A stretch of DNA of 64,000 nucleotides from positions 124,001 through 188,000 of the IMG/VR virus record IMGVR_UViG_3300042923_000569. One strand, written 5' to 3'. The position numbers were made by a program, and so were the translations under genes. Under the pieces are notes generated by a model. That model ran no database searches and was not told the origin of the DNA. It saw only the letters and a program-made list of their open reading frames with translations. Shown here one piece after another: positions 9,417-60,504 of this stretch (its first letter is position 1; every line of letters begins with the position of its first letter).

Positions 9417-9911
9417 TTATAGTTCGTATAGATTCTTAGTTGCGTTTGTTACACGAGAGTCGATTATTTCAGCAATAACATTCCAGTTACCTCCGCCTAA
9501 ATCTGAGCCGATTTTAGGGAAGTGAAAATGTACGTCTCGAATTCCTGATAATTTCTTTAGTAGTGATGCTGTGTTATCTAAATCAATAAACACATTATCA
9601 ATTGCATCGTAACTTACATATTTAGCACCGTCTCGACCATAGTATTCTTGGGTCACTGCGTTGCAAATAATTAGATTTGTTGATTCTGCATGATAAATTA
9701 CCGAGCCAACCTTTAAATGATTGTTTCCATCTGAATATGCTTTATCATATTCATGATATGCGGAGGGAAAACGTCTCCGAAGTTCTTTAGCAAATCCAGT
9801 ACCCATTCTACCTTGAGCATTACAGCCATGAATAATAAAATGTACAGAACTTTCATCTTCCGTAATTGGAGTTAGGTAATCAAATAAGTTACCTTTAAAA
9901 ACTTGTATCAT
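9417..9911 (-). CDS. macrodomain protein (ADP-ribose binding/hydrolase, T4 Tk.4-like)
   Basis: KGNLFD...IIHGCNAQGRMGTGFA...FPKIGSDLGGGNW. Confidence 0.88.
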   Translation of the reverse strand: MIQVFKGNLFDYLTPITEDESSVHFIIHGCNAQGRMGTGFAKELRRRFPSAYHEYDKAYSDGNNHLKVGSVIYHAESTNLIICNAVTQEYYGRDGAKYVSYDAIDNVFIDLDNTASLLKKLSGIRDVHFHFPKIGSDLGGGNWNVIAEIIDSRVTNATKNLYEL

Positions 9912-9952: not shown

Positions 9953-10192
9953 TTATAATCCGAAACGGATTCGCTTTATCTCTTTACGACTTTTTCTTGC
10001 AGTATTACTTTGGTGAAGTCTTAATGCTCGTTTATGGTCTTTCGACAAATACCACGTATCTTCTGGTACATCAAAATCACAATAACCGTCTTCCGTAATT
10101 GTTCCTAAGAAAGCTGACTTTTTAGGAATATCCACAGATGATTTAACACTTTCAAAAATGCCTTTAGCTAATTTTTCTCTGAAACTAAGCAT
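9953..10192 (-). CDS. hypothetical protein
   Basis: 79-aa ORF with basic C-terminus, followed by a terminator. Confidence 0.6.
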   Translation of the reverse strand: MLSFREKLAKGIFESVKSSVDIPKKSAFLGTITEDGYCDFDVPEDTWYLSKDHKRALRLHQSNTARKSRKEIKRIRFGL

Positions 10193-10239
10193 AATTTATC
10201 TCCCAAATTGTAATACGAAGGAATCTGTTTCCTTCAATG

Positions 10240-11251: not shown

Positions 11252-11683
11252 TTAATCTTGTTTTACTTCCATGAATTGCGTAACAGCTTTTACGATACTA
11301 TTACACATACGTTCAGTCAGGTATAATTCACAATCTTCTACATCAATATACATAAACTTATCTAGTTCAGGTTTTTCTTGACCATAACGATTTGTATAAG
11401 TACTGATACACTGCAAGTCATCGACTTCAGGTTTATCAGGTGCAGTATAAAAGAAAAGAACCAGCCGTTTACCCTTTCTGTAAGAAACTTCACCTATTAA
11501 AAGTAAATCTTCTTCACATATGGAGAAGCCGGTTTCTTCGTAGCATTCCCTAACTGCGGCCTCTTCATAAGTCTCTCCTTCCTCAGTTTTACCTTTAGGG
11601 AGATCCCAATGAGATTGACCAGTAGTATGTCCTATAAGTATCTGACCGTCGCGGTAAAAAATTATTCCACACGTATGACGCAT
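11252..11683 (-). CDS. Nudix hydrolase
   Basis: Nudix box WDLPKGKTEEGETYEEAAVRECYEETG. Confidence 0.92.
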   Translation of the reverse strand: MRHTCGIIFYRDGQILIGHTTGQSHWDLPKGKTEEGETYEEAAVRECYEETGFSICEEDLLLIGEVSYRKGKRLVLFFYTAPDKPEVDDLQCISTYTNRYGQEKPELDKFMYIDVEDCELYLTERMCNSIVKAVTQFMEVKQD

Positions 11684-53523: not shown

Positions 53524-54417
53524 TTACAAACTCCGAATAAAATTAAAGGCATTATCTAAGTACGAAGAAATGTTCTTCGCACCAACAGGATTAGCACTAT
53601 GGACATTATATCCAAATACTTTTGCAATCTGTCGATCCATCATATAATCGATAAGATACTTACAGAATGTATAACCAGTTTCTTCATTTTCATTATCGGT
53701 ATCACCCAAATCATGGTCAAAAGAAACAAATTCAGGTAAACCATGTTGTTCAACGTACTTAACAGCTTCCTGATGAGTACGACAAACAACGAAACCTTCA
53801 CCTGGATAGTACTGTTCAACATCACGCAAATCATCCAAAAACATTTTGTATGACTGCTGTGTTTCACCAGTATAATCAATAAGAAGATTATTATCTTCTA
53901 CAAGTTTAATAAGTTCTTTCTTGGAGGTTCCTACGAAGTTCTGCTCCATAAGAACATTCCAGCCACATTCTACTTTACTCGCCTTAAGATAACGACAAAT
54001 ATGTAGTAAATTCACTCCAGCATTTTCAGCAGGAAAATGTTCACCGGTTACTGCGTTATTACGAATTTCCAGAAGTTCTTCATAAGATACCTCTAAAGAA
54101 AATGCATGATTGTGTACGTTAGTTGCCATGTTTTTATAGCTAACTAATGGTTTTAAACGTTCGATAGGAAGGTCATAGTTAATTTCTTCCTTAGCTTCTC
54201 GAACTACGGCAATTTCTAAACTTGGGTCATCTTTTTCTACTAAACCACCAACTGCACCTAATAAACCATCGAACCGTAATTCTGCAAGTACTAGACTTAC
54301 GTTAGGAATATCATTGTATGGATAATTTTTATATGGATTACAGTTCTTAGAAAAGATCCATACAAAGGCACAATCATAACGATTAGAGCGGGTGCCGAAA
54401 GGAATTTCCTGGTACAT
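53524..54417 (-). CDS. NUDT16-like Nudix hydrolase fused to a cyclic-phosphate-processing receiver-like domain
   Basis: LRFDGLLGAVGGLVE...SLEIAVVREAKEEI resembles NUDT16; C-terminal MFLDDLR...VSFDHDLG...VHSANPVG. Confidence 0.78.
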   Translation of the reverse strand: MYQEIPFGTRSNRYDCAFVWIFSKNCNPYKNYPYNDIPNVSLVLAELRFDGLLGAVGGLVEKDDPSLEIAVVREAKEEINYDLPIERLKPLVSYKNMATNVHNHAFSLEVSYEELLEIRNNAVTGEHFPAENAGVNLLHICRYLKASKVECGWNVLMEQNFVGTSKKELIKLVEDNNLLIDYTGETQQSYKMFLDDLRDVEQYYPGEGFVVCRTHQEAVKYVEQHGLPEFVSFDHDLGDTDNENEETGYTFCKYLIDYMMDRQIAKVFGYNVHSANPVGAKNISSYLDNAFNFIRSL

Positions 54418-54425
54418 ATATTGCC

Positions 54426-55199
54426 TTAATTATTTGTTGACATACGAGCAGTTACGTAGTCATTTAATGTTCCAAGAACATCACCAATTGGACTGTAAAG
54501 ATTGTAACTGAAATGATCGTCTTTATCATGTGGTTCTGGATTAATATTAACAGTTTGTGAAGCTGTTGCTAATCCTGCATATACTGACCACGGAATTACA
54601 CTATCAGATGAACCGATAATAATGAAAGTATCGCGTGCATTTGCACTATCAAGTACTTTATAAAGTTCGTTATAGATTGGTTTACGAACACCATTGTCAA
54701 ACCAGAATGTTTCACCAAACATTACAATATTAGGTTTAGAAACAATACCTGGGGTTGGTGTAAATTCAGTATAACCAATATCAGTCACTTCATAATCTTC
54801 AGAGTTTACTGAAAACGGACTAACTACCTCAGTTAAACGACCATGAACATGCATTGCAGATCCACCAGCACGTTCAGCTAAGTCATCAACATTAGCAGTA
54901 ATATGAATTACTCGGTCATCACCATATAGTTTCTGCATACGTTCAATGAAATAATGTCCTGGGTTTGGTTCAAAATTTTGAAGGCCAACACGCATTTTAT
55001 TATAAAAGTTATGTACTGCATCGTAGTGAGTCATGAAGTGTGCAATATTACAAACAATATCAACACTTACGTTATCCCACAATCCATCACCTGCTGCATC
55101 ACGGAAAGTAGGGATACCAGATTCTTTTGACAGACCCGCTCCAGTACAGAAAATCAGTCGTGGCGTTTCATTATTTTGCAAAAAACTATTGAGATTCAT
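54426..55199 (-). CDS. sirtuin (Sir2/CobB family) NAD+-dependent enzyme
   Basis: TGAGLSKESGIPTFRD, HITANVDDLAERAG, HVHG, PNIVMFGE, IIGSS, INP. Confidence 0.93.
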   Translation of the reverse strand: MNLNSFLQNNETPRLIFCTGAGLSKESGIPTFRDAAGDGLWDNVSVDIVCNIAHFMTHYDAVHNFYNKMRVGLQNFEPNPGHYFIERMQKLYGDDRVIHITANVDDLAERAGGSAMHVHGRLTEVVSPFSVNSEDYEVTDIGYTEFTPTPGIVSKPNIVMFGETFWFDNGVRKPIYNELYKVLDSANARDTFIIIGSSDSVIPWSVYAGLATASQTVNINPEPHDKDDHFSYNLYSPIGDVLGTLNDYVTARMSTNN

Positions 55200-55207
55200 T
55201 GTTTACC

Positions 55208-55426
55208 TTAAAGGTGTGAAAAGTAAAGTCGGCAACCACAGTTTGGACATTGTGGTTCCTTAATATAATATCCGTCAGTACCGGGTACGGAACGCGGAGC
55301 ATCTTTTATTACATAAACTTTGAAGCACTTAAAACAAGTAACTTCTTTATCGGCTTGGGGATGATCATCAACCCAATCACCACTATAAAGCCATTTCTGA
55401 TGTTCCGTTAAATCCCCATACTTCAT
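55208..55426 (-). CDS. small zinc-ribbon protein
   Basis: CFKC...CPNCG. Confidence 0.6.
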   Translation of the reverse strand: MKYGDLTEHQKWLYSGDWVDDHPQADKEVTCFKCFKVYVIKDAPRSVPGTDGYYIKEPQCPNCGCRLYFSHL

Positions 55427-55437
55427 TATAAGCTCAC

Positions 55438-55884
55438 TTAAATTGTAGTCTTATTATATTCATTACCAAAGATTAGTTCTTCTGGTAATACGCCAAGTTT
55501 ATAAATTAGTTCAATTAAATCTTCGTCAGTATCTTTTGGTTGGTACACAATACTCATATGGCATTTGTAACCGGGAAATTTATGTGTAAATCCAGCATTA
55601 AGTAATTCTTTATGACGCTGTTCAATTTCAGGTGAATCAAGAAGTAGTACTATTGCTTCCCATTCCCCACCGGGTTTTCCCAACCTTTCAATTCCAGTAA
55701 TCTTCGCTTTATATGTACTATCATTTTGAAGTAAATTTATTTGAGGATTGCTTTCATCTTGCATTAAGGTAACATGAAATTTAGCTGCTGTCAAGCAATC
55801 AATGCCCGCTAGTTTAAATATTTTTCTGATTTCTTTAGCCTGATCAATATCAAGCTTTAGGCTTACAAATCCTTTTCCAGCCAT
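55438..55884 (-). CDS. acb1: anti-CBASS 2H phosphodiesterase (Acb1 / T4 gp57B-like)
   Basis: FHVTL...IVLLLDSPEIEQRH...GFTHKFPGYKCHMSIVY aligns by eye with T4 Acb1 IHST...LVLDSEYLRCRH...GATHDFDDYTPHITLSY. Confidence 0.82.
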   Translation of the reverse strand: MAGKGFVSLKLDIDQAKEIRKIFKLAGIDCLTAAKFHVTLMQDESNPQINLLQNDSTYKAKITGIERLGKPGGEWEAIVLLLDSPEIEQRHKELLNAGFTHKFPGYKCHMSIVYQPKDTDEDLIELIYKLGVLPEELIFGNEYNKTTI

Positions 55885-55896
55885 GAGTAATATCCT

Positions 55897-56091
55897 TTAC
55901 ATAGTTAAAATTAAATAACCTAACAATACTACAAGGATACCTGCAATAATTGCAAGTAAAACTGCACTAACTACATATAGTACTTTTTTATTTTTAGTAA
56001 ATGTAGAACGCTTAGCTTTATATTCAGAGAATGTAAGCCAAAGTATAATTACATACGTAATAACAGATACAACTAGCATTGTGGTTAACAT
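55897..56091 (-). CDS. small membrane protein
   Basis: Two TM segments. Confidence 0.65.
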   Translation of the reverse strand: MLTTMLVVSVITYVIILWLTFSEYKAKRSTFTKNKKVLYVVSAVLLAIIAGILVVLLGYLILTM

Positions 56092-56112
56092 ATTTAATAG
56101 TCTCGTCTAAGT

Positions 56113-56138
56113 TAAAAAGAAGGGGGCATAAGCCCCCT
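56113..56138 (-). terminator. intrinsic terminator after nampt
   Basis: AGGGGGC-UUAU-GCCCCCU plus U-rich tail. Confidence 0.8.
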
Positions 56139-56143
56139 AAAAA

Positions 56144-57628
56144 TTACAAACCTTTGTTTGCACGTTCACGTACTTCATCGAAGTTACTGAGATTCATAAT
56201 CTCACCATTAACGTACACATCAACCATCATATCACGTAGGAATGGGTTGACTTCTTGTAGTTCAATACGCTCTGCAATAATCTTGTGAGTATTAGTACAC
56301 TCATAAGTAGTGACACGACCACGTAAAGAACGCTTGCCTACATCAGTGATCGGATCTTTGAATAAATCTTCCCAAACACCAGTGTTTAGCTGTTGTGCTG
56401 AACCTTTCATTGCGAAGCTGTAAGTATCGCGACCTTTTTCTGGATGTACTAACTTACCACCCATACCAAATACGATGTTAGAAAGACAAATCTTTTTAGC
56501 TTCAATATTTGCAACAATCTGACGGATACTGTCTTCGTTGATACCATCACCCTGAATCACTCCAATGAATGAAGGTAATTCTTTATAACCATTTGCGTTT
56601 ACAGTAGAACCAAACTTCTCCATCAAAATCTCAGTGATTTCAATTGGCATTGTTAGTGGATCACCGCTATCTGGACGAAGAACTAACTTAGCTCCAGGGC
56701 AAAGTGCTGCGATTTCCATAATGGTAGCTTTCAAACGAGTACCAATGTATTCGCGGGTAAAACGATATGCATCATAGGTATCAATCACTACTGATACGAT
56801 TGGTGGAACACCAATTGAACCTTTAGCAATATATGCACGTACTTTCATTTCCCACAAACGAACCATCTTAACTGCCATATTAAAGTCGTCGCGTTTGTCT
56901 GCGTCTGAGTTAGAACATGTTGCACTATGCTCACTCGCAGTAACTGAACTCAAATATGCATTAGTTGTGTGGTAGTATTGTTTAATGTAACGGTTAGCAC
57001 TTAGACAATCAGAACCGTTGAACAATGCCGCATGTGCCATACCTGCAATAATTGCAGATTCGAAGCTTGAAGCTCCGCGATCACCGAAGTTATGCAAGTG
57101 ATAGTCCACAAAGCGAGAGCCAGTATGACGCTCCATTGTATCAGCTAAGAATTCTTTAATGCTACGTGCATTACTAGCAACTGTAGTTGGGAACCAAACA
57201 CCACGCTGAAGCTGAGTTTCAATGTAGCTTGCAATTACACAAACACGCGGATCAGTACTGAAAGAACGTACTAATGGACTACCAACAGGAACTAACGTAC
57301 CTTCTGGAATTGCACGAATATGTAATGGAATTTTACCTCCATGTACTTCTACAATGTGTTCCCAAAAACCGCGATCAAAATCATCGCCACGTTGTTCAGT
57401 TTCTAGCTGTGCTTCGTCAATGTCATCAGTAGTGATGCTAATATCTAAGTACTCTTGTAGATAGTACTGTAGACCCATCATCACAACATGTGTTGCGTAC
57501 TTACTTGGTTTACGTGCAATGATATTTGATTCAAGAGCTACAACACCCTCTTTCATCATAAAACCGTGACCAGTTTTGTACGAATCGACATTTAAAATAA
57601 AGTTTACATTTTTGTTAATTTTGTTCAT
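56144..57628 (-). CDS. nadV: nicotinamide phosphoribosyltransferase (Nampt/NadV)
   Basis: NVDSYK, HNFGDRG, ASEHS, VVIDTYD, LVLRPDSG, VIQGDG, VFGMGG, KDPITDVGKRS. Confidence 0.95.
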   Translation of the reverse strand: MNKINKNVNFILNVDSYKTGHGFMMKEGVVALESNIIARKPSKYATHVVMMGLQYYLQEYLDISITTDDIDEAQLETEQRGDDFDRGFWEHIVEVHGGKIPLHIRAIPEGTLVPVGSPLVRSFSTDPRVCVIASYIETQLQRGVWFPTTVASNARSIKEFLADTMERHTGSRFVDYHLHNFGDRGASSFESAIIAGMAHAALFNGSDCLSANRYIKQYYHTTNAYLSSVTASEHSATCSNSDADKRDDFNMAVKMVRLWEMKVRAYIAKGSIGVPPIVSVVIDTYDAYRFTREYIGTRLKATIMEIAALCPGAKLVLRPDSGDPLTMPIEITEILMEKFGSTVNANGYKELPSFIGVIQGDGINEDSIRQIVANIEAKKICLSNIVFGMGGKLVHPEKGRDTYSFAMKGSAQQLNTGVWEDLFKDPITDVGKRSLRGRVTTYECTNTHKIIAERIELQEVNPFLRDMMVDVYVNGEIMNLSNFDEVRERANKGL

Positions 57629-57674
57629 ACTAAGACTCCCTTAGATATTAAGTGTTGAAAGCTACATCGCTTTC
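57629..57674 (-). promoter_or_regulatory. two-hairpin leader of nampt (NAD leader, copy 1)
   Basis: GAAAGC-GAUGUA-GCUUUC, N12, CUAAG-GGAGU-CUUAG, U, AUG. Confidence 0.72.
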
Positions 57675-57686
57675 GATTATTTTGGT

Positions 57687-58202
57687 TTATACCAAATTCT
57701 GTACTAAAATTTTTGGAATTAATGCCATTAGATTGTGTGGTTCAAACATATACTCACCAAATCTTACGTAAGAATACATTGCATATGGATTAATCTTTTC
57801 AATTGCGATTTCATCAATAGAAAAAGCATATGTATCACCAAACTCATCATAAGTAGTGAATAACATTTCATCATCGACAAAAATTATATCGCTTCGTCGA
57901 GGTTTTGCGATGTATACAAAAGCACTATCTGAAAATGCAAAGTAAACCTGCATAAATTTATGTTCTTTACTTACTTCAAGTGAGTTGTAAACACCATATG
58001 TTCTAATAGCAAATATTTTATTATCTTCATTATCTGCCGGTTGATTAACTATCATCTGCAACAGATATGAAATTGGTTCTATGTGTGTAATACCAGTTGG
58101 TAGTTTATATTCAGACAAAGATAACTTTTGTAAAAAAGTTTGCTGATTATCTGAAATGTACTTCATTTCATGATAAAAACTATCTGGCTGGCAGTACAAC
58201 AT
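57687..58202 (-). CDS. hypothetical protein between the two NAD salvage genes
   Basis: 171-aa ORF. Confidence 0.6.
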   Translation of the reverse strand: MLYCQPDSFYHEMKYISDNQQTFLQKLSLSEYKLPTGITHIEPISYLLQMIVNQPADNEDNKIFAIRTYGVYNSLEVSKEHKFMQVYFAFSDSAFVYIAKPRRSDIIFVDDEMLFTTYDEFGDTYAFSIDEIAIEKINPYAMYSYVRFGEYMFEPHNLMALIPKILVQNLV

Positions 58203-58245
58203 AAAAACCTCTTAATTAAAAGGAGTACCGAAGTACTCCGATAAC

Positions 58246-59361
58246 TTAAAGAATACCTAAGAAAGTATCAATAATACTTAAATGATCTTCAAAGAACTTA
58301 TCACGGTTCTGAACTAATTCACCAAGTGGCATCCAGAATGCTTTTTCAGCATCATCTGCACCTTTAACTTTAGGTAATGTATTATCCTGAAGTTGAATGT
58401 ATGCACATTTAGTAATGATACGCCAGCGTTGGGAACGATTGAAATCACCAAACTCCATACTTTCACGGATTGAACCTTCAAGTACTTTCATTGGAACATC
58501 AATCTTTGTTTCTTCTTTTAATTCACGTAAAGCAGTTTGAATTTGATCTTTATCCTGCCAAGCGTCAAAGAACCCACCGGGTAGAGCATATAAACCTTTA
58601 CCTGGGAAAGTGCGGCGTTTAACAAGAAGAATGTGACCTGCACTGATTACCATTGCGTCACCCGTTAAGAACGGAATGTTGTTATATGGTAAACGTTCAT
58701 TCATCTCTGCACGATAACGTTGAACAAAGTTAAACTCGCCAATTAGATTATCAAAAATTACTGGTTTAGTTTGCATGAACTTACCAAGAAATTCTTGTGT
58801 TTCTTCTGGTAATGATTCAGGAATCTGTTTAGTACTGAAAAATTGATTACGAACTTCGGTACTATTAATCGTAATAGGATTTGATTCTGCGTCCTTCTCA
58901 CGATATTGCTGAGGAATACCAGCTTGCGATTTCTTAACTTCACCAATGAAATCCTGTTGCCATTGTGGGAAGAAGTTAAGATAAAAAGTACTTTCATCTG
59001 CTTCTTTCTGACAACCAGTAATTACAATGTTATCGCTTGAAGTAACGGACTTAACTTGTTCGTGTACTTCCATCAACCATTTGCTGTTGTTATATACATA
59101 ATCGTGGATTGGTAAGATATTAATCTTAACCGAACGCCCTTTAGCCCACTCTTCTTGAACTAAACGATTAGACATAGCATCCAGTACCTGACGGCGTTCT
59201 TCAAACGAAAACGGATTTTTTGAATCACGTGCAAGCTCCGAACTACCAACAAGAATTACCAAACGGTCTGCATTTTCTAATGCATGTTTAATGGTTGCTT
59301 CATGACCTGTGTGTGCCATTTGGAAACGACCAATATACACATATACTTTTTCTTTACTCAT
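58246..59361 (-). CDS. nadM: bifunctional NMN adenylyltransferase / ADP-ribose pyrophosphatase (NadM-Nudix)
   Basis: YIGRFQMAHTGH (HxGH), KNPFSFEER, NSTEVR; Nudix LPGGF...ALRELKEET; DDAEKAFW. Confidence 0.94.
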   Translation of the reverse strand: MSKEKVYVYIGRFQMAHTGHEATIKHALENADRLVILVGSSELARDSKNPFSFEERRQVLDAMSNRLVQEEWAKGRSVKINILPIHDYVYNNSKWLMEVHEQVKSVTSSDNIVITGCQKEADESTFYLNFFPQWQQDFIGEVKKSQAGIPQQYREKDAESNPITINSTEVRNQFFSTKQIPESLPEETQEFLGKFMQTKPVIFDNLIGEFNFVQRYRAEMNERLPYNNIPFLTGDAMVISAGHILLVKRRTFPGKGLYALPGGFFDAWQDKDQIQTALRELKEETKIDVPMKVLEGSIRESMEFGDFNRSQRWRIITKCAYIQLQDNTLPKVKGADDAEKAFWMPLGELVQNRDKFFEDHLSIIDTFLGIL

Positions 59362-59407
59362 TCTAAGACTCCCTTAGCTATTTGTTATTCAAGGCTACAT
59401 CACCTTG
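59362..59407 (-). promoter_or_regulatory. two-hairpin leader of nadM-Nudix (NAD leader, copy 2)
   Basis: CAAGGU-GAUGUA-GCCUUG, N12, CUAAG-GGAGU-CUUAG, A, AUG. Confidence 0.72.
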
Positions 59408-59414
59408 TATTCAT

Positions 59415-59443
59415 ATTATATCACAAAAAAGTTCAATGTTTCA
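59415..59443 (-). promoter_or_regulatory. early-type promoter TGAAAC-N17-TATAAT
   Basis: aaaaTGAAACattgaacttttttgTGaTATAAT, upstream of nadM-Nudix. Confidence 0.78.
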
Positions 59444-59598
59444 TTTTTTATTTTGTGTATAAACTCGTTAAGTACAGAAATCATAACAGAAATTTTCAAT
59501 TTTGCAAGTACTTTTTGTTAAAAAGTAAATATTAATAGAGGTGCCTAATTTTTAACATCTCAATAAATACATAATATAACTTTCTTAGGAGACTAAAA

Positions 59599-60504
59599 AT
59601 GGGAAAACCAATTGCTGGTCGTAATAAATCCCCATTCGGAGTAGATGGCATTAATGTTGATGCTGCTGTACTTGCCGATGGTACAAAATTAACTAATATT
59701 CGTATTAGTAAACAACGTTCTGCTAACGTATTTGATCTAATGAGTGTTGATGGACTAACTGTATATCCGTTCATCGAAATCACTGGTGTTGATAAAAATG
59801 GTGCAGCGTTAGACGTTTCTGCAACAGCCGCAGATCTTTCTGATAGTATTTCTCCAGGAAGTTTCTGTATTAGTGCTGTAGATTCAAATGGTGATGTTGC
59901 TGGATTCGCAGTGAAACTATTACTTAATAAAGTAATTCTACAAAATGGTAGTGCTTTGTTTATGACTGATTATACTAGTCAAGGTCAGGTAATTGTTGCT
60001 GTAACTTCAGTAGCTGTATCTCCACTTACTGCTGCTATCCGTGTAGGGGCAACTCAACAACTTACTGCTACTATTGCACCTGCTGATGCAACTAATAAGT
60101 CTGTAACTTGGGTTTCAAGTGCACCTGCTATCGCTACTGTAAGTGCTACCGGTTTAGTATCTGGTGTTGCTAACGGTACTGCTAACGTAACTGTTACCTC
60201 TGTTGATGGTTCATTTACTAGTGTTTCTGCTATTACTGTAAGTACTGCCGTAACTGGTGTTACTATGACTCCAGATACCGTAACTTTAAGTCTAGCTGGT
60301 ACAACTACACAACAACTAACAGCTACTGTAGCTCCTGCTTCAGCATCTGTTAAGACTGTTACTTATGTTTCATCAGCACCTGCTGTTGCAACTGTAAGTG
60401 CATCTGGTCTAGTTACTGCTGTTTCTGCCGGAACTGCAACTATTACTGTTACAACTACTGATGGTTCATTCACTGACACTACTTCAGTTACTGTTACTGC
60501 ATAA
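59599..60504 (+). CDS. virion surface protein with two tandem Ig-like (Big_2) domains
   Basis: Only credible plus-strand gene; QQLTATIAPADATNKSVTWVSS and QQLTATVAPASASVKTVTYVSS; AGGAG RBS, TAAATA motif, terminator. Confidence 0.88.
   Translation: MGKPIAGRNKSPFGVDGINVDAAVLADGTKLTNIRISKQRSANVFDLMSVDGLTVYPFIEITGVDKNGAALDVSATAADLSDSISPGSFCISAVDSNGDVAGFAVKLLLNKVILQNGSALFMTDYTSQGQVIVAVTSVAVSPLTAAIRVGATQQLTATIAPADATNKSVTWVSSAPAIATVSATGLVSGVANGTANVTVTSVDGSFTSVSAITVSTAVTGVTMTPDTVTLSLAGTTTQQLTATVAPASASVKTVTYVSSAPAVATVSASGLVTAVSAGTATITVTTTDGSFTDTTSVTVTA

Follow-up and report, generated by a model that had tools for sequence, protein, structure and literature searches.

Nampt and NadM together are the phage route that rebuilds NAD+ after host defence systems destroy it, which raises the question of how phages time or dose this pathway. 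We addressed it for a jumbo phage genome (IMG/VR record IMGVR_UViG_3300042923_000569), of which a stretch of 64 kb, hereafter called the window, was analysed. In this genome the nadM-Nudix and nampt genes are each preceded by a small two-hairpin leader that wraps the ribosome-binding site. The original prediction, made from the sequence alone, was that these leaders represent an undescribed RNA-level element, which is under structural selection and is shared by, and specific to, the two NAD+ salvage genes. Every test we could run supports this inference. The same architecture was found in dozens of unrelated phages and in several bacteria, it matches no Rfam family, and it is probably a pathway-specific switch on translation, although this function is inferred from sequence comparisons only.

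Structure of the leaders in the window

Both leaders (Table 1) are composed of a 6-bp hairpin (HP1), a 12-nt A-rich spacer, a second hairpin (HP2) around the Shine-Dalgarno sequence, a single base (T before nampt, A before nadM) and the ATG codon. The HP1 stems differ by changes that preserve pairing (G-C to C-G, A-U to G-C, and C-G to U-G), exactly as originally described. On the other hand, the spacers (AACACTTAATAT in the nampt leader, AATAACAAATAG in the nadM leader) are 7/12 identical and both A-rich, hence their original description as "unrelated" is too strong. ViennaRNA predicts both hairpins as the MFE structure, with z -2.2 to -2.5 for the 49-nt leaders. The exact 15-mer of HP2 occurs only twice in the window, and only these two of 94 ORFs of at least 80 aa in the window carry such a hairpin over the Shine-Dalgarno sequence. 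Under a loose definition, hairpins with the Shine-Dalgarno sequence in the loop occur at 22 of 213 ORF starts, which is no more than at random ATGs with an SD-like triplet (18%), and thus they are not a general habit of this phage.

Table 1. Features of the NAD+ salvage locus, in the order of transcription; coordinates refer to the window.
Feature	Coordinates	Strand	Sequence or product	Supporting analysis
Promoter-like site of nadM	59415..59444	-	ATGAAA, 18 nt, TATAAT preceded by TG (extended -10; TG-n-TATAAT at 59423..59415); the -10 ends 7 nt before HP1	10 of 12 matches, TG present; an equivalent TATAAT lies 7-9 nt before HP1 in all eight relatives
nadM-Nudix leader	59407..59362	-	HP1, spacer, HP2, one base	
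HP1 of the nadM leader	59390..59407	-	CAAGGU-GAUGUA-GCCUUG (6 bp including a U-G pair, hexaloop)	-6.4 kcal/mol; covariation; hit of the model of unrelated phages at 59364-59407, E 0.024
Spacer of the nadM leader	59378..59389	-	AAUAACAAAUAG (A-rich, G-poor, single-stranded)	
HP2 of the nadM leader	59363..59377	-	CUAAG-GGAGU-CUUAG; Shine-Dalgarno GGAG in the loop, AUG after 1 nt	-2.2 kcal/mol
nadM-Nudix	58246..59361	-	bifunctional NMN adenylyltransferase / ADP-ribose pyrophosphatase, 371 aa	PF01467, PF00293; PDB 2qjo (E 4e-64), 2qjt
Terminator-like hairpin	58222..58239	-	GGAGUAC-UUCG-GUACUCC followed by a U run	present in seven of the eight relatives with loop changes, absent in Kae01
ORF between nadM and nampt	57687..58202	-	171 aa, function unknown	phrog_25832; no Pfam family; found only in close relatives
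Extra hairpin	57681..57696	-	UUUGGU-AUAA-ACCAAA, enclosing the UAA stop of the 171-aa ORF, 6 nt before HP1 of nampt	ViennaRNA fold; comparison with relatives
nampt leader	57674..57629	-	HP1, spacer, HP2, one base	
HP1 of the nampt leader	57657..57674	-	GAAAGC-GAUGUA-GCUUUC	-6.6 kcal/mol; covariation; hit of the model of unrelated phages at 57631-57674, E 0.011, best in the window
Spacer of the nampt leader	57645..57656	-	AACACUUAAUAU (A-rich)	
HP2 of the nampt leader	57630..57644	-	CUAAG-GGAGU-CUUAG, then U, then AUG	
nampt	56144..57628	-	nicotinamide phosphoribosyltransferase (NadV), 494 aa	PF04095, PF18127
Terminator-like site	57387..57371	-		terminator scan
Terminator-like hairpin after nampt	56121..56138	-	AGGGGGC-UUAU-GCCCCCU plus a U run	terminator scan

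Conservation in Rak2-like phages

In complete Rak2/GAP32/CBB-like genomes (about 350 kb) the HP2 15-mer plus AUG occurs exactly twice, before these two genes. The motif is present upstream of the orthologues in all eight Rak2-like relatives examined, although Kae01-like nampt leaders keep HP1 without the HP2 stem. HP1 is 100% paired in 20 distinct Rak2-like leaders, with double changes at 5 of 6 pairs. By contrast, HP2 is essentially invariant within this family: its only stem change is one flipped pair in RaK2 nadM, and Kae01-like nadM leaders change its loop (GAGUA), so the covariation in the family is in HP1. Reading the Rak2-like HP1 loop as a start-stop mini-ORF (AUG-UAG, UUG-UAG or GUG-UAG) does not fit the GAAGUA and GUAGUA variants or the pentaloop classes. 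The 171-aa ORF cannot be the general partner of the element, because it exists only in the close relatives.

Distribution in unrelated phages and in bacteria

The same architecture, with variable uninterrupted stems of 4-10 bp, an HP1 loop ANNGA, GWWGUA or GGAGU, an HP2 loop GGAGU and a spacer of 4-19 nt, precedes nadM, nampt and in two cases pnuC in unrelated phage contigs with a GC content of 27-64%. It occurs also in Pseudoalteromonas, Marinicella, alphaproteobacteria, a cyanobacterium and a Leptospiraceae MAG, and therefore it is not a phage speciality. For the statistical analysis of diverse leaders we used an ungapped 40-nt seed, since MAFFT alignments put the stems out of register. In 45 distinct leaders from unrelated phages and bacteria 96.4% of cells are paired, compared to 60.5% in shuffles and 24-57% in slid controls; the covariation is 0.914 against 0.197 (0 of 500 shuffles), and 9 of 10 pairs show double changes. 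Chance is further excluded by the finding that a model built only from unrelated phages, without any Rak2-like sequence, ranks the two leaders first and second in the whole window. The G-U pairs and the strand of the hits show that the element is read on the mRNA strand: all 46 hits at E<=0.02 are on the coding strand, and so are all 87 hits of a descriptor (86 on the + strand in loci oriented by nadM, while the one on the - strand is in the window, whose genes are on that strand).

Of the 87 descriptor hits, 82 are before nadM or nampt, and one of the rest is before pnuC; a second pnuC case was found separately. The positive set was largely collected through NadM homology, so co-occurrence with NadM is partly by construction. 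A gene-agnostic DNA pattern (GGATAGACC-N10-24-AAGGAGTTTT) in IMG/VR gave 21 of 25 matches before nadM or nampt. Some nadM and nampt genes lack the motif, namely those of RB43, the KVP40-like VH7D, 44RR2.8t and phiCbK, and of the Nampt-only phages K, warpig and K5.

Possible mode of action

Several features point to the level of translation rather than to a function of the mRNA 5' end. The nampt copies are mostly operon-internal: a -10-like hexamer lies upstream in 3 of 30 nampt leaders against 20 of 52 nadM leaders, and in one locus HP1 overlaps the end of nadM. HP2 ends 0-3 nt before the start codon in 78 of 82 leaders, and it is uniformly weak (-3.0 +/- 1.3 kcal/mol), while HP1 is stronger (-7.8 +/- 3.3 kcal/mol). 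The distance from the HP1 loop to GGAG is 25-30 nt in 65 of 82 leaders, whatever the stem lengths, and it is kept (27 nt) even in Kae01-like nampt leaders, where the HP2 stem is lost. Interestingly, the two loops are alike (N-W-G flanked by G..U or A..A), and in alphaproteobacteria they are identical (GGAGU).

Based on these observations we propose, tentatively, that the leaders are copies of a conserved cis-acting element that controls translation initiation of the NAD+ salvage genes. HP2 holds the whole ribosome-binding site, with the first G of GGAG paired and GAG in a tight loop; on its own it would barely hinder the ribosome, but once stabilized it would block 30S binding. HP1, with its lineage-typical loop, would be the specificity determinant, and one trans-acting effector could contact both loops across the unstructured, G-poor spacer and clamp HP2 shut, so that one signal would set the output of nadM, nampt and, where present, pnuC together. 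We favour, without much confidence, a dimeric protein encoded with the pathway, i.e. NadM-Nudix itself acting as an autogenous repressor, possibly released or strengthened by its ligands (NMN, NAD+, ADP-ribose), even though no RNA-binding activity of NadM-Nudix is known to us. A protein rather than a metabolite is suggested by the HP1 loops, which differ between lineages (AUAGA, AGAGA/AGUGA, GWWGUA, GGAGU) but are mostly the same among the leaders of one genome, by the absence of any fixed nucleotide in the spacer, and by the lack of the motif in the three Nampt-only phages without NadM-Nudix that we checked. However, shared loop types within a genome could also reflect duplication or gene conversion of leaders, and two loci do show recent leader duplications. 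Besides, the nadM and nampt genes of RB43, VH7D, 44RR2.8t and phiCbK work without HP1, so NadM does not need the element. If the effector is NadM-Nudix, this would be a metabolic enzyme moonlighting as a translational repressor; irrespective of the effector, the element is a new RNA family and a marker for NAD+ salvage genes in viral metagenomes.

The closest alternative, which we regard as possible but somewhat less likely, is a riboswitch, in which a small ligand (NAD+, NMN, ADP-ribose or nicotinamide) is bound between or by the two loops and stabilizes or opens HP2, so that translation follows the NAD+ status of the infected cell. Association of one motif with one metabolic pathway in unrelated phages and in bacteria of several phyla, independent of host lineage, is the classic signature of a riboswitch; the motif is located at the ribosome-binding site, and the tight spacing of the loops fits a defined tertiary arrangement. 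The known NAD+ riboswitch classes cover only nadA and pnuC contexts; this would be a third, structurally unrelated and unusually small class. It is also possible, and hardly less likely, that phages use such a switch to turn on their NAD+ reconstitution enzymes exactly when a host NADase defence (Thoeris, SIR2 or DSR type) depletes NAD+ or floods the cell with ADP-ribose and nicotinamide, which would be a metabolite-gated counter-defence shared with the bacterial nadM-nadV-pnuC salvage genes. On the other hand, there are very few invariant unpaired nucleotides, the HP1 loop comes in at least four lineage-specific versions, which is unusual for a ligand pocket, and the spacer has no conserved position (the word AUAG is present in only 27% of leaders and at varying positions). 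There is no junction or internal loop. By eye we could not detect a kissing interaction or a pseudoknot between the HP1 loop and the HP2 loop, the spacer or the early coding region: the loops are not complementary to each other, and the one candidate partner did not covary with loop type. The conservation of the HP2 loop, in turn, is explained by the Shine-Dalgarno sequence itself.

It is unlikely that the leader is a constitutive expression element without any sensing, in which HP1 protects the mRNA as a 5'-terminal or processing-site hairpin, the spacer is a ribosome standby/S1 site and HP2 presents the Shine-Dalgarno sequence, the whole travelling with the cassette by descent and horizontal transfer. 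In agreement with this possibility, HP1 starts 3-11 nt after the -10-like hexamer in the 20 nadM leaders mentioned above, HP2 is too weak to block ribosomes alone, and the spacer is A-rich and G-poor (G at 1-12% per position over most of it), like translational enhancers. Public RNA runs gave only metatranscriptome contigs of relatives and no usable 5'-end data; one RNA-library contig of a relative ends exactly at 57674, the 5' end of nampt HP1, but this is a single contig and weak evidence. However, a generic expression module would be expected to spread to other genes, whereas the hits described above lie, with few exceptions, before three non-homologous NAD+ genes. Moreover, the loop sequences and the loop-to-SD distance are conserved while the stems turn over completely, and most nampt copies are internal.

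A target for an endoribonuclease that cuts at GGAG in ribosome-binding sites, as phage T4 RegB appears to do, with HP1 as an auxiliary determinant of a timed shut-off, is very doubtful, since GGAG, although displayed in a small loop in nearly all copies, is simply the Shine-Dalgarno sequence and the motif occurs also in bacterial chromosomes and in phages of many unrelated types, albeit we did not search for a RegB homologue. A DNA operator bound by a dimeric regulator such as NrtR or NadR is the least likely: both elements are inverted repeats near a promoter of NAD+ genes, and the Nudix domain of NadM resembles PDB entries 3gz5/3gz8 (deposited as MutT/nudix family protein, possibly NrtR), but the stem sequences change freely while pairing is kept, G-U pairs exist only on the sense strand, hits are on the coding strand only, and many copies lie inside operons, next to start codons.

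Comparison with known RNA elements

Searches of Rfam 15 revealed no match to the NAD+-I (nadA motif) or NAD+-II (pnuC motif) riboswitches or to any other family, neither in positions 56000-60000 of the window at E<=10, nor in 20 distant loci at the gathering score, nor in three leaders at E<=10, and we found no description of the motif in the literature. NAD+-I and NAD+-II are cis-regulatory RNAs that likewise lie in front of NAD+ metabolism genes, and NAD+-II precedes pnuC; two copies of the present motif do so too, but most precede nadM or nampt. NAD+-I, however, has tandem bulged stem-loops with a conserved ACANCCCC bulge (PMC7297122), whereas HP1 and HP2 have no bulges. The guanidine-II (mini-ykkC) riboswitch is a likely precedent for two short hairpins with covarying stems, conservation confined to the loops and closing pairs, a non-conserved linker, and control at the ribosome-binding site. 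Yet the loops described here are not ACGR, they are not self-complementary and, except in alphaproteobacteria, not identical to each other, the spacing is tight rather than free, and the genes concern NAD+ rather than guanidine.

Among protein-bound elements, the operators of the MS2/R17 coat protein (on the replicase start) and of T4 gp43 (on its own mRNA, an autogenous case) are probably likewise small, weak hairpins that contain or abut the Shine-Dalgarno sequence and AUG, with specificity in loop nucleotides. Here, in contrast, there are two hairpins at a fixed distance, and the element serves a small regulon of non-homologous metabolic genes across unrelated phages and bacteria. CsrA/RsmA sites also comprise two hairpin loops, one over the Shine-Dalgarno sequence, bridged by a protein dimer, and HP2 displays GGA; however, only about 5 of 82 HP1 loops contain GGA or AGG (GGAGU/GAGGU), while AUAGA, AGAGA, AGUGA and GWWGUA have none, and the motif is pathway-specific and occurs in phages of varied, unidentified hosts. 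In the pyr leaders, PyrR, an enzyme-related protein of the pathway, binds a purine-rich hairpin that may resemble the AGAGA class of HP1, modulated by pathway nucleotides, but PyrR acts by transcription attenuation with antiterminator switching, and the Rfam PyrR model does not match an AGAGA-class leader at E<=10. Neither hairpin has the appearance of an intrinsic terminator, as on the mRNA strand HP1 is followed by the A-rich spacer and HP2 by AUG, and the scan called terminator-like sites on this strand only at the three positions listed in Table 1. Interestingly, the extra hairpin upstream of the nampt leader is also conserved, with a compensatory version AUGGC-AUAA-GCCAU in phage BF and a U-G variant in fHe-Yen9-04.

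The leaders and their locus

On the minus strand the window encodes NadM-Nudix (PF01467 and PF00293), a 171-aa ORF of unknown function and Nampt (PF04095 and PF18127). The leaders of nadM and nampt read exactly as stated in the original prediction, which had described a shared two-hairpin architecture in front of both genes: HP1, a 6-bp stem with the loop GAUGUA, is followed by a 12-nt A-rich spacer, by HP2 (CUAAG-GGAGU-CUUAG), by one base, and then by AUG. The HP2 15-mer occurs only at these two places in the window, and both hairpins are the predicted minimum-energy structure. An extended -10 promoter-like site ends 7 nt before HP1 of nadM, while one terminator-like hairpin follows nadM and another follows nampt. 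An additional hairpin, UUUGGU-AUAA-ACCAAA, has the UAA stop codon of the 171-aa ORF in its loop and lies 6 nt before HP1 of nampt. Interestingly, phage BF has a compensatory version of this hairpin (AUGGC-AUAA-GCCAU), fHe-Yen9-04 has a U-G variant, and a relative seen in an RNA run has the loop AUGA. RNA-library data gave only contigs of relatives, which cover nadM and nampt at 85% identity or more but not the 171-aa ORF between them; that ORF is therefore the least conserved part of the locus. One of these contigs ends at the first base of nampt HP1, which is a hint at most.

Coordinates of features in the window and in other analyzed loci
Feature	Location	Coordinates	Strand
nadM-Nudix	window	59361..58246	-
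Terminator-like hairpin after nadM	window	58239..58222	
171-aa ORF of unknown function	window	58202..57687	-
Hairpin enclosing the UAA stop of the 171-aa ORF	window	57681..57696	-
First base of nampt HP1 (end of one RNA-library contig)	window	57674	
nampt	window	57628..56144	-
Terminator-like hairpin after nampt	window	56138..56121	
Locus with RNA-library contigs of related phages	window	56100..59600	
171-aa ORF region not covered by these contigs	window	57738..58205	
Run of NAD+/nucleotide-signal genes	window	53524..55884	-
Acb1-like anti-CBASS phosphodiesterase	window	55438..55884	-
SIR2-family protein	window	54426..55199	-
Nudt16-like Nudix fused to a cyclic-phosphate-processing receiver domain	window	53524..54417	-
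Nudix hydrolase	window	11252..11683	-
Third site with the same layout	window	10193..10236	-
79-aa ORF of unknown function (phrog_15319)	window	9953..10192	-
Macro-domain gene	window	9417..9911	-
Leader copies before unrelated neighbouring ORFs	L090	1300-1338, 1651-1695 and 2433-2477	
Leader copy before an unrelated neighbouring ORF	L039	1714-1759	
SD hairpin before nadM	L147 (RB43)	2961-2976	
SD hairpin before nampt	L154 (KMI9)	2478-2494	

Conservation in Rak2/GAP32/CBB-like phages

The window belongs to IMG/VR contig 3300042923_000569 (357,873 bp), and the region is about 81% identical to the Rak2/GAP32/CBB-like jumbo phages, namely Pectobacterium CBB, Cronobacter GAP32, Serratia BF, Yersinia fHe-Yen9-04, Erwinia Kaldavass and Xanthomonas XbC2, with Klebsiella fENko-Kae01 and RaK2 further away. 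Both genes carry the leader in all eight relatives examined, although the Kae01 nampt leader has HP1 without the HP2 stem. An exact scan of IMG/VR for the HP2 15-mer followed by AUG found exactly two copies per complete 350-kb genome, always nadM and nampt; RaK2 has one exact copy, because its nadM version is altered. In 20 distinct leaders of this family HP1 is paired in 100% of cells, with changes on both sides at 5 of 6 pairs, and the stem sequences include CAAGGU, CAAAGC, GAAAGC, GCCGAU, GACAGC, GAGAGU and GAGAAC. The HP1 loop keeps G-W-W-G-U-A, whereas HP2 is invariant apart from RaK2 nadM (CUUAG-GGAGUA-CUAAG, with the middle pair flipped) and Kae01-like nadM (loop GAGUA). Curiously, in the nadM leaders of Kae01-like phages (loci L007 (Kae01), L034, L035 and L038) the loop word (G/A)AUGUAG is present twice, once directly 5' of the HP1 stem and once as the loop plus the closing G, which gives a 12-nt tandem repeat, GAUGUAG-CCGAU-GAUGUAG-UCGGU. 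This may mean that the single-stranded word itself is what is recognised.

Distribution in unrelated phages and statistical support

The motif is far wider than this family. An unrelated 172-kb phage contig has the identical HP2 15-mer before a 38%-identical nadM, preceded by a 9-bp hairpin with the loop AUAGA. Retrieval of nadM relatives from IMG/VR gave 80 loci, with GC 27-64% and with NadM 34-41% identical among the distant ones. Most of them start with the same architecture: a variable stem capped by AUAGA, AGAGA, AGUGA, ACAGA or AAAGA, a 4-19-nt spacer, a 4-7-bp A/U-rich stem around GGAGU or GGAGC, and then AUG after 0-3 nt. A simple descriptor, run on both strands of collected loci and of the window, returned 87 distinct sites followed by an open frame, all of them on the coding strand: 52 before nadM, 30 before nampt, 1 before a PnuC transporter (PF04973), 3 before small unknown ORFs next to nadM, and 1 elsewhere in the window. 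A second pnuC case appeared in the search with the covariance model. Leader copies nearly identical to the nadM leader stand before unrelated neighbouring ORFs in two of the analyzed loci (L090 and L039): a repeat protein with a sub-threshold DUF6745 match, a 99-aa ORF, and a 213-aa phrog_1843 protein. These look like recent duplications of the leader onto other genes.

A covariance model built from an ungapped 13-sequence seed (R1) found 46 hits at E<=0.02 in 332 kb, all on the coding strand. On that alignment 96.4% of cells are paired, against 60.5% in shuffles and 24-57% when the partners are slid; the covariation score is 0.914 against 0.197 (0 of 500), and 9 of 10 pairs change on both sides. 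A second model (R2), rebuilt from those hits and containing no Rak2-like sequence, ranked the nampt and nadM leaders first and second in the whole 64-kb window (E 0.011 and 0.024), although E-values from the shortened calibration are rough. The positive set was gathered mainly through nadM homology, with the exception of a gene-agnostic DNA pattern (GGATAGACC, 10-24 nt, AAGGAGTTTT) scanned over all IMG/VR contigs, which matched 25 times: 11 before nadM, 10 before nampt, one coding sequence seen twice, and two unclear. In the window only these two of 94 ORFs of at least 80 aa have such an SD hairpin, and looser SD-in-loop hairpins are no more common at ORF starts than at random ATGs.

Bacterial members, and genes without the motif

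The motif precedes nadM, and in three loci also nampt, in bacterial genome records, including Pseudoalteromonas luteoviolacea, Marinicella meishanensis, a Cellvibrionaceae MAG, Robiginitomaculum, a Gloeomargaritaceae cyanobacterium, a Leptospiraceae MAG and a Sulfurovum MAG. Alphaproteobacteria (Methylosinus, Methylocystis, Jannaschia, Phyllobacterium and others) have the HP1 loops GGAGU, GAGGU or GAUGU, the same as or close to the HP2 loop. The motif is lacking in Polaromonas-type nadM genes, in RB43, the KVP40-like VH7D, 44RR2.8t and phiCbK, and in phages with Nampt and Prs but no NadM-Nudix (Staphylococcus K, Felix-O1-like warpig and Pseudomonas K5). Interestingly, in RB43-type T4-like phages nadM and nampt lie far apart in the genome, yet RB43 nadM and KMI9 nampt (loci L147 and L154) are each preceded by the same SD hairpin, AACGUG-GAG-YACGUU, directly before AUG and without a recognisable HP1. 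This HP2-only version may be a reduced form of the element.

Anatomy of the element

The distance from the first HP1 loop base to GGAG is 25-30 nt in 65 of 82 leaders, whatever the stem lengths, and it is still 27 nt in Kae01-like nampt leaders that have lost the HP2 stem. HP2 is uniformly weak (-3.0 +/- 1.3 kcal/mol; -2.2 in the window), whereas HP1 is stronger (-7.8 +/- 3.3). The spacer is A-rich, nearly free of G, and has no fixed position. The nucleotide after GGAG is U or C in 65 of 82, so the first G can pair and leave a GAG triloop; HP1 loops likewise read N-W-G flanked by A..A or G..U. A -10-like hexamer lies 3-11 nt before HP1 in 20 of 52 nadM leaders, in 3 of 30 nampt leaders and at 4.7% of random positions. 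The element therefore works both at mRNA 5' ends and inside operons, which points to translation rather than transcription initiation or 5'-end protection.

Possible mechanism and relation to known systems

The comparative evidence shows a structured mRNA element under selection that is specific for NAD+ salvage genes, and that sits so that the whole ribosome-binding site lies in a marginally stable hairpin. From this evidence alone, without functional measurements, we infer a translational operator in which an effector bridges HP1 and HP2 and clamps HP2. We tentatively favour a protein effector, with NadM-Nudix as the obvious candidate: the only strongly conserved unpaired bases are in two similar small loops, the HP1 loop type differs between lineages but is mostly shared by the leaders of one genome, and no junction or pseudoknot is evident. 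NadM itself is an ordinary homologue of PDB 2qjo and 2qjt. A metabolite riboswitch appears somewhat less likely but remains a serious rival, since the pathway-restricted, host-independent distribution is typical of riboswitches and a two-hairpin riboswitch has a precedent. A constitutive stability or translation module is unlikely, as the gene specificity and the conserved loops and spacing argue against it. We regard an RNase target as very improbable, and a DNA operator as more improbable still, given the strand-specific G-U pairs and the freely changing stems.

Rfam 15 has no family matching the leaders in searches at gathering score or at E<=10, and neither NAD+ riboswitch class nor PyrR appeared among the hits. 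Full-text literature searches and a look into the 224-motif survey likewise found no description of the motif. In its inferred mode of action the element is most like the MS2 and T4 gp43 operator hairpins, whereas in layout it most resembles the guanidine-II two-hairpin riboswitch, although it is not a member of that class.

Other sites and genes in the window

A third site in the window has the same layout: UGAAGGAA-ACAGA-UUCCUUCG, UAUUAC, AAUUUG-GGAGA-UAAAUU, AUG. It precedes the 79-aa ORF of unknown function (phrog_15319), which is followed by a terminator and the macro-domain (ADP-ribose-related) gene, and it is the third-best hit of model R2 in the window (E 0.095). In relatives the stems are conserved without covariation and the loop drifts (ACAAA, ACAA), so its membership is uncertain. 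The macro-domain protein and a separate Nudix hydrolase lie about 46 kb from the salvage genes, so further ADP-ribose-related functions are in the same window. Directly downstream of nampt, on the same strand, lies a run of NAD+/nucleotide-signal genes typical of counter-defence: an Acb1-like anti-CBASS phosphodiesterase, a SIR2-family protein and a Nudt16-like Nudix fused to a cyclic-phosphate-processing receiver domain.
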